Below the pieces are notes generated by a model, which did not search any database, had not been told where the DNA came from, and saw nothing but the letters and a program-made list of their open reading frames with translations. Positions 2,758 through 30,387 of a stretch of 64,000 nt of DNA are shown here, in pieces; position 1 is the stretch's first letter; the number at the start of each line of letters is the position of its first letter. This DNA comes from Entomortierella parvispora E1425. Its lineage: Eukaryota > Fungi > Mortierellomycota. The position numbers and the translations under genes are program-made. Location: contig BQFW01000007.1 in the NCBI GenBank assembly GCA_020891255.1, positions 682,001 to 746,000 on the forward strand, read 5' to 3'.

Positions 2758-4608
2758 ATGCAAATCCAACAAATGAAGCCCCAACAGCCCCAAAGGCGCC
2801 TGTACTCGTTGACTGCCGTCCTGACTCTTCTCTTCTTGGCACTACCAACAACAAATAACCTCCAATACGATGGATCGGTGGCAGTAGGACATGGACAGAG
2901 AGGTGGAGGGGGGATGGTAGCTGCCACCTCAGCTACAACGGGAGAAAAGCCCTCCGTCAACAATAACCCATACTCAATCTTGAACAGAGTCGCTGTTGCC
3001 TATTCTGGACAATCCACCCCCCACTCGTCCGTTGGTACTGGATCCCATCAAAAACTTACCGCGGCAGAATCCAAGGCGGGTCGGATAAAGAAACGATCGG
3101 CCTCAGAAGTAGACGCAAAGGAAGCGCAACAGCAAAAGAAACTCTTCTCTGCCTACGAGGCCATTGTCAATTCGGAAAGTCAGATCCCCATGTTCTTGCA
3201 CCAAAGAAAACAGCCTACCAAGAAACACGCACAAACGCCAGCAAAACAGGCCGCGACCGCTGTAGCAGCCGCAAAGACGAACAGCAGCGAGAAATTAAAA
3301 AAGCAAGACAATCAAAAAAACGCCACCCAAAAGAAGAAAGTCAAGGGAGGCAACAAAAAGAAAGGAAACGCGAGCTCGACTGAGAAAACGGCCTTGCCCG
3401 ATGCGTCGTGGGATCGACCTCAGCGGAAAATTCGCTCGGAACAAGAACCGACTGTCGCGGCTGTAGAAGAGGCACCGACGCTCAAGACCCTCTTTGATAA
3501 TGTCTTTGGTGGACCCAATGCCGAAACTGCGGACGCCAAGGCCGTAGAGGAAGAACTGAAGGAGGACTCCAGTCACACAAAGGATCCCATCATCCCGGCG
3601 TCCGTGGGTGAACATATTGTTGAGGATCTGTCAAAGCTTATGAATGTCGAGTCCGTTACGGATGCCAAGGCCGCCGTGGAGGCTTTGGCAGCAGCTGCAA
3701 AAGAAATGTATCACCATCCTCAGCCCGAGTCAGGAGCAGTTCATCACGCAATCGAGCACCTTACTGAAGCCGTTGCTGCTGCTGCCGCTGCAGCAGAGAG
3801 CGCCGTCTCAACTCTGACAGAAAAGGCGCAGGAGGGTCTGGCTGCTCCCATGTCTTCTCATCCTGAAGAATCCAAGGAGGCGAATGAGTCGGTAGCCTCG
3901 ACAGACAAGAAGGGCACCGTTGTCATCAACGATCAGGAATATGAGCATCATCATGCTGAGCATGAAGAAGAAGACCGCGTGGGTGTTTATGATACAGACA
4001 ACCAGCGACAACAATACTATCCCCATCAGAAGGGACATGCTCTGCAGGACAGCAATGACTTCTTGGCCCATTATATGCACAGAGCTGATCCAATGGCGAC
4101 TTTTTGGAAAAGGGTCCTGACTACTTCCGCGATCGTCCTCTCTGCATTCATGGGTATTTTGCTCGTCATCTCTTACAAGATGTACAGACGCAACCTTCGT
4201 CTGGAAGCTCGATTTGGTGACGAGTCCAATGGCACAGTGGCCACGTCCCCTCTGGCGTTCTTCCACTACATCACCTTGGGCATCTTTGCCTGGCCCGCGG
4301 CTTTTTCTAGCTCTATCCAATTTCCATCCCCGTCATCTCTTTCAAGATCTGGATCTGGCACCTCCTCTTCCGCTGCTTCTGCAACTACAAAAGTCAGGAG
4401 AAGAAGCAGCCTTGGTCTTTTGGTTGGCGGATCCGAGAAAAGTCTGCTGCCTGAGCCTGTGGTTGCAAAGTCCTCGTCTTCAGCAGCTGTGAACAGTGGT
4501 GGTGGACCCATGCCCGCGATCCGAAGGACATCAGCCTCAATCCATATGCCGCATCTGGAGCAAACCCAGGAACAGTTTCAAAACCAAAACCAAGGCTACT
4601 CAAGTTGA
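2758..4608 (+). CDS. hypothetical type I membrane protein (signal/anchor, Lys- and Ala/Glu-rich ectodomain, TM helix, Ser-rich tail)
   Basis: 616-aa uninterrupted ORF with a hydrophobic N-terminal segment (LYSLTAVLTLLFLAL) and a TM segment (VLTTSAIVLSAFMGILLVISY). No family recognised. Confidence 0.7.
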   Translation: MQIQQMKPQQPQRRLYSLTAVLTLLFLALPTTNNLQYDGSVAVGHGQRGGGGMVAATSATTGEKPSVNNNPYSILNRVAVAYSGQSTPHSSVGTGSHQKLTAAESKAGRIKKRSASEVDAKEAQQQKKLFSAYEAIVNSESQIPMFLHQRKQPTKKHAQTPAKQAATAVAAAKTNSSEKLKKQDNQKNATQKKKVKGGNKKKGNASSTEKTALPDASWDRPQRKIRSEQEPTVAAVEEAPTLKTLFDNVFGGPNAETADAKAVEEELKEDSSHTKDPIIPASVGEHIVEDLSKLMNVESVTDAKAAVEALAAAAKEMYHHPQPESGAVHHAIEHLTEAVAAAAAAAESAVSTLTEKAQEGLAAPMSSHPEESKEANESVASTDKKGTVVINDQEYEHHHAEHEEEDRVGVYDTDNQRQQYYPHQKGHALQDSNDFLAHYMHRADPMATFWKRVLTTSAIVLSAFMGILLVISYKMYRRNLRLEARFGDESNGTVATSPLAFFHYITLGIFAWPAAFSSSIQFPSPSSLSRSGSGTSSSAASATTKVRRRSSLGLLVGGSEKSLLPEPVVAKSSSSAAVNSGGGPMPAIRRTSASIHMPHLEQTQEQFQNQNQGYSS

Positions 4609-28825: not shown

Positions 28826-28895
28826 GACCGAAGGGCTGTAACATAAGATGGTTCGGACGTTCTTGGTGTCCTCGCTGGTGTCTTGGGTAACTTAG

Positions 28896-29307
28896 TTTTT
28901 TTTTCTATGCCTTTCTAGTGTCGACAAATGAACCTGGCCACGCACACAAGCCAGTAGACGCAGGTCTGCCAGCGTAGGATCGTCTTGGGCACCTGGACAA
29001 CGGCCTTGGAGATGGTCGGAGTGAGGTTTGCCGCATTGGCAGTGTCTTGTGGAAGGATTACACCAGAGGCATTGTCCCACGGTTGGCCCCGCTGTGCTTG
29101 CTTCTTCATCTTGGGGCGGACACCTTGAGCCTTCCCCCATGCAATCGTAACCAGATACGTACAAGGGCATCCCTGTCCAAACGACGAATAAGCTGGTGAG
29201 CAACTGAAACCACGACCGAGCGAGGGCTTTTAATAATTGGGGTCCAGGCATTGATCAAAGTCGAATGTAGCAGTACTTGGTAGGCAGTGGCGACCGAGGA
29301 GATCTGG
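28896..29307 (-). mobile_element. older decayed retroelement 3' fragment A (probable non-LTR ORF2 C-terminus); probably continues at 30216 and beyond, on the other side of element B
   Basis: Frameshifted minus-strand coding remnant: ...AHQLIRRLDRDALVRIWLR / AWGKAQGVRPKMKK / CQCGKPHSDHLQGRCPG...ADLRLLACVRGQVHLSTLER, ending in an A9 tract (T9 at 28896-28904). Confidence 0.5.
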
Positions 29308-29316
29308 TGAATTTTT

Positions 29317-30206
29317 TTTTTTTTTTCTTGTCGAAGGGTCCCTCGCAGGGGTTTATTGTCTGTTAATTGTAAGTACACATACGCAGGTGCGCCTGCTCCA
29401 CACAAGGGAAACGGACTAAGGGGGTCGTTCTGGGTCTGGCAGACTCAGGCTGTTTTTCAAAATTGCTTCTCTCCTGAGAAATAAAAAAAAATCAAAAAGC
29501 AGTCAGGCTCTGTCGTTCACCGCTGGTGTGGGTCTGAGTGTTTCCTACAAGGGCTGGTACGAGAGTCAGGCCTCTTTGGCTGCAGCGTGCGGTCCTCTCT
29601 AACTCGGTGGCCACTGGGAGCTGGGAGGCACATTCTTTCTTGTTTATTCCAGAATATTTCTGGAGGCGAAGGGAGGACTATTCTCTACAGAGCGACCCAG
29701 CGATACCTGCACGAACAAGGCGTGCTTTTAAAAAACAGGCTGTGTCCCACAGTCTAGGAAGATTCAGGCCGGTCCAGCAAGCTTGGACTGCCACCCAGAT
29801 CTGGGACGACCCCCTAAATAAAATGCTTTTGCATTGCACAACCCGTCTATGACGGCCCATGCACCCTGATTTCGTAACACCGCGACCAAAGGGCGGGAGC
29901 TTCTGGCTTGCTACAGCAAGGCCAGGTCCAGTCCCCTCTGTGGCCTTTCATGCTCGTTCGTCACTAGTTTCCGAGATCCTTTTCCAAGAAGTACTTCACT
30001 CCCCCTGTTCTTTCCATGACGTTCAACACGCGCTTTCCTTGGTATTCATCTAAGACATCTTTGTCCGCAGCCTTGTGGAGTCTCTTCATCCTTGTCGCAT
30101 CAAACCTGTCCCGGTTAAAGTTACCAAAGTTACTGTTGCTACTTCCGTGTCCGCCAGCACGGGTACTGGCTTGCTATAGCAAGGCCAGGTCCAGTCGTCC
30201 CTTCAT
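29317..30206 (-). mobile_element. 5'-truncated retroposed element B (non-LTR-like), about 890 bp
   Basis: On the minus strand it has a TT|AAAA-type target and a 9-bp TSD (TGAATTTTT at 29308-29316 and 30207-30215). It also has an A15 tail (T run 29312-29326), AATAAA about 25 nt before the tail (29352-29357), and a short coding remnant ending ADKDVLDEYQGKRVLNVMERTGGVKYFLEKDLGN* (stop 29964-29966). Confidence 0.7.
29903..30196. repeat. 31-bp hairpin-forming direct repeat, two copies (29903-29933, 30166-30196)
   Basis: CTGGCTTGCTA(C/T)AGCAAGGCCAGGTCCAGTC, 30 of 31 identical. Each copy folds as CTGGCTTGC / GCAAG-G-CCAG. Confidence 0.9.
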
Positions 30207-30302
30207 TGAATTTTTAAGCACCCCTTAATTGCACACCCTTAAGGAAACCTTAAGGATTGAGTTCTGGGTATATAAGTAATAAATAGAAACATGTCATCAT
30301 CA

Positions 30303-30374
30303 GCCCGCATAGCTCATTGGTAGAGCGTCTGCCTAGTAAGCAGAAGGTAGCAGGTTCGATCCCTGCTGTGGGCA
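30303..30374 (+). tRNA. tRNA-Thr (anticodon AGT), intronless
   Basis: Acceptor stem GCCCGCA/TGTGGGC plus discriminator A; D-arm TAGCTCATTGGTAGAGC; anticodon arm TCTGC-CTAGTAA-GCAGA; T-arm GCAGG-TTCGATC-CCTGC. Confidence 0.97.
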
Positions 30375-30387
30375 CTTGATCATTATC

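Follow-up and report, generated by a model that had tools for sequence, protein, structure and literature searches.

Integration of long interspersed nuclear elements (LINEs) at fixed positions beside tRNA genes has been described only in social amoebae in the literature that we searched (PMC5006619, PMC5911963). TRE5-A of Dictyostelium discoideum is a LINE of the apurinic/apyrimidinic endonuclease (APE) type with two open reading frames (ORFs) and an oligo(A) tail. It is found upstream of tRNA genes of any specificity and in opposite transcriptional orientation to them, with TRE5 insertions lying 44-54 bp upstream (PMC5911963). Repeated hits at one tRNA gene occur, and the behavior has been seen as a way to reach safe sites within a compact genome. 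The ORF1 protein binds TFIIIB subunits, and an intact B box is needed for targeting. NLTR-A (D. purpureum) and NLTR-B (P. pallidum) are described as carrying RNase H downstream of the reverse transcriptase (RT) and as inserting upstream of tRNA genes (PMC5006619), at 2-6 bp and at about 50 bp, respectively; NLTR-B has a single ORF. The NeSL-group elements NeSL-1_TV, LIN15_SM and LIN25_SM are also associated with tRNA genes, and each of them recognizes the sequence of a single tRNA gene (Pro, Arg or Glu) (PMC4640811). Ty3/Ty1 and the Dictyostelium element DGLT-A integrate position-specifically upstream of tRNA genes via the RNA polymerase III (Pol III) machinery (PMC5911963). These are integrase-based long terminal repeat (LTR) elements, as are all fungal tRNA-targeting examples known from the literature searched, in which no description of tRNA-gene-targeting LINEs in fungi was found. 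Here we describe two LINE families, A and B, of the soil fungus Entomortierella parvispora, copies of which are located upstream of a tRNA-Thr(AGT) gene in a 64-kb window (the whole stretch of DNA analyzed, 64,000 nt of contig BQFW01000007.1).

Both families integrate by position and not by sequence, since the target sequences that are duplicated upon insertion differ from copy to copy. The region upstream of tRNA-Thr, the sole tRNA gene of the window, is very probably a stack of three successive transposon insertions at one tRNA gene: an old copy of family A, a copy of family B between A and the tRNA gene, and a small DNA transposon inside B (Table 1). The anatomy of this stack, the family membership of its parts and the geometry of the insertions were observed directly, in the window and by comparison with other copies in the genome. 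That the tRNA gene is the target had been proposed in a preliminary description made from the window alone, and the tabulation of distance and orientation over other copies bears this out.

For this tabulation, 27 loci could be evaluated, which are a sample of the genome, and the copy lists behind them are lower bounds (40 candidates scored per search). tRNA genes were mapped on the loci with ARAGORN, allowing introns, and with Rfam. The chance expectation was 1.8e-4 per locus, calculated from the 192 nuclear tRNA genes annotated in the published E. parvispora assembly (PMC8759367). At 17 of the 27 loci the distance from the 5' end of the element to the start of a tRNA gene beyond it is 96-152 nt (P = 1.3e-57). 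The gap has a median of 113 nt for family A (107-135 nt, n = 9) and of 143 nt for family B (96-152 nt, n = 8). All 21 tRNA-associated loci show the head-to-head orientation (P = 5e-7), in which the 5' end of the element faces the 5' end of the tRNA gene, and in three of the four distance outliers a Ty3/gypsy LTR or a whole Ty3/gypsy element is wedged between the LINE and the tRNA gene. The targets cover ten amino-acid specificities (Thr, Arg, Gly, Glu, Ala, Asp, Ser, Lys, Asn, and Leu). Eight copies are flanked by exact target duplications of 9-19 nt with unrelated sequences (11-19 nt in the seven copies other than B of the window), which place the first nick at -87 to -135 relative to the tRNA gene. 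Several insertions commonly accumulate at one gene, as in the order A, A, A, B at a tRNA-Asn gene in L036 and B, A, B in L020. Seen from the tRNA side, 7 of 59 listed nuclear tRNA genes have an A or B match upstream, compared to 0.24 expected. The layout extends beyond this species: two soil-metagenome contigs carrying relatives with 50-61% identity have the same head-to-head arrangement at tRNA-Leu and tRNA-Gln.

The mapping of intron-containing tRNA genes affects these counts. Lys-CTT (L034:6518-6621), Arg-CCT (L026:2452-2596) and Lys-TTT (L055:2397-2496) were missed by ARAGORN with default settings and recovered by Rfam or the intron option; otherwise three targeted loci would appear to be free of tRNA genes. 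A separate observation, known by coordinates only, is a fragment with 80% identity to B (G000:C11:327125-327336) that lies about 104 nt downstream of a tRNA gene (C11:327441-327513) in the same orientation. This fragment may belong to a downstream-targeting, TRE3-like relative.

A number of observations weigh against targeting as a general rule. Four of the 27 evaluable loci have no recognizable tRNA gene beyond the 5' end; among the individual cases, nothing more than a tRNA-like remnant is seen at L054, and an LTR truncates L065. The nick of B in the window, at -87, is 46-48 nt nearer to the tRNA gene than those of the two other B copies with clean duplications (-133 and -135). Among the metagenome relatives a tRNA gene was seen in only 2 of about 10 that could be evaluated. 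The 27 loci were sampled from copy lists that are lower bounds and do not amount to a census of the genome. Finally, tRNA-Thr of the window lacks a CACGTG element that is found upstream of many of the other tRNA genes at these loci, and CACGTG therefore cannot be an obligatory landmark.

The copy of B in the window displays the marks of target-primed reverse transcription that had been noticed before. The sense strand of the element is the minus strand, so its poly(A) tail appears as a run of 15 T on the plus strand, and the polyadenylation signal AATAAA (TTTATT on the plus strand, 29352-29357) is located 25 nt inward from it. The element is flanked, at 29308-29316 and 30207-30215, by an exact direct repeat of 9 bp (TGAATTTTT). 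Without B, the target reads ...GGTGAATTTTT|AAGCACC..., with the nick at TTTTT|AA on the tRNA-sense strand, 87 nt before the tRNA gene. Target-primed reverse transcription from a nick in the tRNA-sense strand can thus be read directly from the junctions. Taken alone, the 9-bp repeat is moderate evidence for a target duplication, because five of its nine bases are T residues that the poly(A) tail would also supply; the family data settle the case.

The interior of B is more complex than the single 890-bp unit (29317-30206) that had been assumed. A whole-genome search with this segment returned more than 60 matching pieces, and positions 1-103 and 498-850 of the query are adjacent in other copies. 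The distal part, 29327-29419, has 93% identity to other B copies, in which it runs straight into the segment beginning at 29814 in the window, and 29814-30166 is 99% identical to at least seven other copies, which run on into ORF2. The intervening 395 bp (29420-29814) are a separate transposon, and 30167-30206 is not colinear with B: at the truncation point the sister copies continue into coding sequence and not into this filler, which reads as the signature of a template switch. Window B therefore consists of about 460 nt of the 3' end of a LINE, a template-switch filler and a later DNA-transposon insertion, and its 99% identity to sister copies makes it young. Several B copies carry own internal sequence at the 5' junction (L015:819-857, L020:2549-2617, the 5' junction of L023, and 30167-30196 of the window), with pieces that come from the vicinity of reference positions 2792-2859 or 3046-3076, which points to frequent template switches as reverse transcription comes to a close.

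The 395-bp insertion in the 3' untranslated region (UTR) of B is flanked by a 3-bp TAA duplication (29417-29419 and 29815-29817), and other B copies that lack it have an empty site with a single TAA. Three further full-length copies occur in the genome (C10:1107208, C10:1097375, and C8:2242405), and a member of the family in L024 has a TGT duplication. At G000:C6:324823-326875 both termini of this transposon are found about 2 kb apart; this segment may be a longer parent or relative of the short, non-autonomous form.

Element A has about 80% identity to at least 40 genomic copies and its reading frame is broken by deletions of 16 nt and 1 nt. Its probable tail, a run of nine T, lies 7 nt beyond the last family-homologous base (28912), and the copy lacks the roughly 200-nt 3' UTR that is found in other A copies. 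The preliminary description had placed B inside A, since removal of B seemed to rebuild a continuous frame. Nesting of B in the coding sequence of A is ruled out, however: the homology to family A does not extend past 29297, and in a comparison with the family sequence the 68 nt beyond it (29298-29316 plus 30216-30264) score lower than shuffled controls, so the continuous frame across B is no evidence for such nesting. B landed in the spacer between A and tRNA-Thr. Before the insertion of B, the 5' end of A was about 106 nt from tRNA-Thr and did not reach to within 90 nt as had been suggested; that A is an old fragment in the same orientation as B holds. A 10/13 repeat proposed as the decayed target duplication of A does exist, but is at chance level, as 46 of 300 shuffles reach the same match, and no convincing target duplication was found when one was looked for at this old copy.

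Table 1. Features of the transposon stack upstream of tRNA-Thr(AGT). Positions are those of the 64-kb window.
Feature	Position	Strand	Basis
Probable poly(A) remnant of A (T9 on + strand)	28896..28904	-	Sequence read
Element A: old, 5'-truncated 3' fragment, C-terminal part of ORF2, LINE family A	28912..29297	-	Genome copies
Spacer of host sequence separating A from B; left copy of the B duplication, TGAATTTTT, at 29308-29316	29298..29316	.	Not A-like
B poly(A) tail, T15 on + strand; first 5 T shared with the duplication	29312..29326	-	Sequence read
B 3' UTR, distal part, with AATAAA; 29417-29419 is TAA, the left duplication of the DNA transposon	29327..29419	-	
Non-autonomous DNA transposon in the 3' UTR of B, 395 bp, like a miniature inverted-repeat transposable element (MITE)	29420..29814	.	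21-nt terminal inverted repeats
B proper: end of ORF2 (last 41 codons, 29964-30089) and proximal 3' UTR; 5'-truncated at 30166	29815..30166	-	
B 5' junction filler: 31-nt duplicate of 29903-29933 and about 10 untemplated nt	30167..30206	-	97% repeat
Right copy of the B target-site duplication, TGAATTTTT	30207..30215	.	Direct-repeat search
Host spacer, 87 nt, with TATA-like box at 30269-30276 (about -34 to -27)	30216..30302	.	Sequence read
tRNA-Thr(AGT) gene, presumed targeting landmark	30303..30375	+	ARAGORN; Rfam RF00005, 70 bits

A and B are true APE-type LINEs and are related to each other. The genome search recovered APE and RT domains in a single ORF for both families, so that the LINE identity first proposed from the window has been confirmed; the full-length elements are known by their coordinates and, for B, by one annotated protein. 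Pfam scans of the genome located a full-length B with an ORF1 homologue at C2:2887800-2888402 in a 631-aa frame, followed by APE (PF03372, C2:2888725-2889423) and RVT_1 (C2:2890573-2891373) in one shared frame of 1743 aa; B-family sequence begins at C2:2891713 and is contiguous with this frame. The annotated protein EMPS_01762 of E. parvispora contains RVT_1 (3e-20) and matches the B ORF with 96% identity over 580 aa. A full-length A has APE (PF03372, C2:3487610-3488311) and RVT_1 (C2:3485642-3486478) in one open frame of 2361 aa that ends in L052. The A ORF in L052 (535 aa) contains RNase H (PF00075, 7e-13) followed by a CCHC motif and the conserved tail, and the B ORF has the same layout (PF00075 at 4e-6); in both families RNase H is followed by a roughly 375-aa CCHC tail. 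In the longer copies the ORFs of A and B align colinearly over 453 aa with 27% identity (E 6e-57), including the 20-aa tail motif by which their relationship had been recognized in the window. Copies of both families share a common 3' end and have scattered 5' truncation points.

A and B are very probably both two-ORF LINEs, and B has a gag-like ORF1 and an ORF2 composed of APE, RT, a long linker, RNase H and the CCHC tail. ORFs of 1928-2030 aa in the soil-metagenome relatives encode APE, RT and RNase H in this order, with a linker of about 600 aa between RT and RNase H (APE was found in L071, L080, and L081), and the intact ones have an upstream ORF1 with a CCHC knuckle. A single-ORF architecture, considered for L071 and L080, was rejected: in translations of the upstream flank ORF1 runs off the start of the locus, and an ORF1 homologue is present in B. 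Among solved structures, human LINE-1 ORF2p is the closest (E 1e-12), and this match and the RNase H domain are the pointers to the LINE clade. In an APE-RT word search of proteins, the named relatives belong only to Mucoromycota (Linnemannia, Entomortierella, Rhizophagus, and Geosiphon).

Two further candidates for separate families were evaluated. Sequence beside T-runs in L013 and L016 that resembled a third retroposon family is the 3' UTR of family A. The repeat in L038-L049 (e.g., G000:C11:854073-857470) is present in 12 copies of 99% identity; the unit measures at least 2.2 kb and begins with GGATTTATCTATTTGAC in every copy. Each unit comprises an A-like 3' fragment (about 75% identity) and then at least 1.4 kb of other sequence; because of the fixed start and this other sequence it was rejected as a simple copy of A, and it was left out of the targeting statistics. 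Three of the 12 units start 25-44 nt downstream of the 3' end of a tRNA gene (Glu, Ile, and Tyr) and most others start after an A-run.

The elements that wedge between LINE stacks and tRNA genes belong to a Ty3/gypsy LTR retrotransposon. A young copy, L031:1202-7344 (G000:C12:1093101-1099243), has 608-bp LTRs with 99.8% identity, a pol with RVT_1, RT_RNaseH and integrase, and a gag with a CCHC knuckle. The distance from the end of the 5' LTR of this copy to a tRNA-Asn gene, head-to-head, is 14 nt, and that of matching LTRs (L006:2256-2863 and L035:3113-3720) to tRNA-Glu and tRNA-Asp is about 5-16 nt. RT of the same type is found at a constant 2.76-2.80 kb from tRNA starts (C8:597770 and C1:2854035). 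A family of 1244-aa RTs that keeps a constant distance of 2.8 kb to tRNA genes was considered as a third LINE; this was rejected, as the family is this LTR element. Judged from its position and domains, the element looks like a case of Ty3-style targeting, at 5-16 nt from tRNA genes and thus closer in than LINEs A and B.

The insertions in the window were very probably formed in the following order. The first to integrate, by target-primed reverse transcription, would have been a family-A LINE whose 5' end came to lie about 106 nt before tRNA-Thr and which then decayed. A family-B LINE would next have entered the remaining spacer: its endonuclease would nick the tRNA-sense strand at TTTTT|AA, 87 nt upstream of the gene, the T-run would prime on the poly(A) tail, reverse transcription would halt about 460 nt in and close with a template switch, and a second nick 9 nt away would give rise to the target duplication. 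The small inverted-repeat DNA transposon would later have entered the 3' UTR of B. More generally, the first nicks of A and B fall about 87-135 nt upstream of tRNA genes of any specificity, always with the element 5' end placed beside the tRNA 5' end, and repeated insertions would push older copies outward to produce stacks. The most probable mechanism is a tether between an element protein, which could be ORF1p (by analogy with TRE5-A) or the tail of ORF2, and a landmark that assembles on active tRNA genes or immediately upstream of them, with TFIIIB, TFIIIC and Pol III or a factor on a conserved upstream CACGTG element as candidates. We infer a tether to the Pol III complex by analogy with TRE5-A, the ORF1 protein of which binds TFIIIB (PMC5911963).

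Among the alternatives, the one that survives best accepts that the targeting is real and places the landmark elsewhere, in a factor bound to the upstream CACGTG or TGGTGGCG motif or in the first positioned nucleosome, with the nick made at the distal edge of the footprint. Of 27 tRNA upstream regions, 16 have CACGTG at -56 to -107 (P = 5e-24) and 7 have TGGTGGCG at -76 to -121, just beyond CACGTG; both occur upstream of the tRNA gene in metagenome contig L076. In four of the five family-A copies with clean duplications the nick is located 1-7 nt distal to the outermost motif, and the range from -87 to -135 is well outside the region around -30 near the start site in which the TFIIIB-guided insertions of Ty3 and TRE5-A occur (PMC5911963). 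On the other hand, the upstream region of tRNA-Thr in the window lacks both motifs, CACGTG is also missing from the spacer of several other targets (L015, L050, and L055), clean duplications are few (n = 8), and the two motifs may simply belong to the Pol III promoter context. We consider this alternative possible but unlikely. As to the motif itself, CACGTG often occurs as TCACGTGA and often twice (e.g., L016:2369-2374 and L058:1997-2002, in the 27 tRNA upstream regions of loci L001-L089), contig L076 derives from another member of the Mortierellaceae, and no mention of a CACGTG element upstream of tRNA genes was found in the literature search.

A second alternative is that there is no preference at integration, and that randomly inserted LINEs survive in the harmless regions upstream of tRNA genes or that tRNA genes lie in repeat-rich DNA. 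The four of 27 evaluable copies with no tRNA gene nearby would fit this explanation, as would the gathering of other transposons (the Ty3/gypsy element and the DNA transposon) at these sites. Selection cannot, however, explain a distance window only 60 nt wide, a single orientation in 21 of 21 loci, or 99% identical copies at different tRNA genes, and the observations already disfavor this improbable explanation. Recognition by the endonuclease of a DNA sequence common upstream of tRNA genes, as in R1/R2 or the tRNA-gene-specific NeSL/LIN elements, is less probable still: the nick of window B at TTTTT|AA is typical of APE-type nucleases, but the eight clean duplications share no sequence, the nick contexts vary (GAA|TCA, GGG|GAC, and AAA|ATT), and the targets have ten amino-acid specificities. 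The idea that A and B are processed pseudogenes of a host gene mobilized in trans, to which the absence of RT and endonuclease from the window itself might have pointed, is already refuted by the family data, as the peptides are matched by the C-terminal ends of ORF2 proteins of LINEs (with APE, RT and RNase H) and by no host gene, and each family has at least 40 copies with variable 5' truncation. A match to a host gene, which the preliminary description had named as grounds for its refutation, is thereby eliminated.

Targeting by position relative to the tRNA gene thus remains the preferred explanation, and it brings A and B close to TRE5-A, with which they share the APE-type enzyme, the two ORFs, the oligo(A) tail, the opposite transcriptional orientation and the repeated hits at one gene. 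They differ from it in the distance, as the nicks at -87 to -135 and the gaps of 96-152 nt lie farther out than the TRE5 insertions, in the architecture of ORF2, which in TRE5-A consists of APE, RT and a zinc finger without RNase H whereas A and B have RNase H and the long CCHC tail, and in the host, which is an amoebozoan for TRE5-A and a fungus for A and B. NLTR-A and NLTR-B are alike in having RNase H and in lying upstream of tRNA genes but differ in their distances, and the single ORF of NLTR-B is unlike the two ORFs of B. In contrast to the NeSL/LIN elements, A and B use an APE nuclease, are found at tRNA genes of ten specificities and land upstream rather than recognizing the sequence of the gene. 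Ty3/Ty1 and DGLT-A share the position-specific integration, but A and B are LINEs that use target-primed reverse transcription instead of an integrase.

On balance we favor, with some reserve as to the whole, a scenario in which two-ORF RNase H LINEs of the Mortierellaceae, with distant kin in Glomeromycotina, acquired position-specific integration in a zone about 90-135 bp in front of Pol III genes by an evolutionary route separate from that of the TRE and NLTR elements of Amoebozoa, share the region with Ty3/gypsy elements (5-16 bp), and perhaps read an undescribed CACGTG element rather than TFIIIB. If this is true, no earlier LINE system of this kind would be known from outside Amoebozoa, and the fungal family in which it occurs has members that can be cultured in the laboratory. 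Fungal LINEs that follow the same orientation rule at a different distance and with a different architecture would be a clear case of convergent safe-site evolution, and would supply a second, independent system for the steering of target-primed reverse transcription by the Pol III apparatus. The conserved CACGTG in front of tRNA genes may also represent a new feature of the promoter-proximal region. For the annotation of Mortierellaceae genomes, stacked 5'-truncated fragments beside tRNA genes are to be expected and should not be taken for assembly artefacts.

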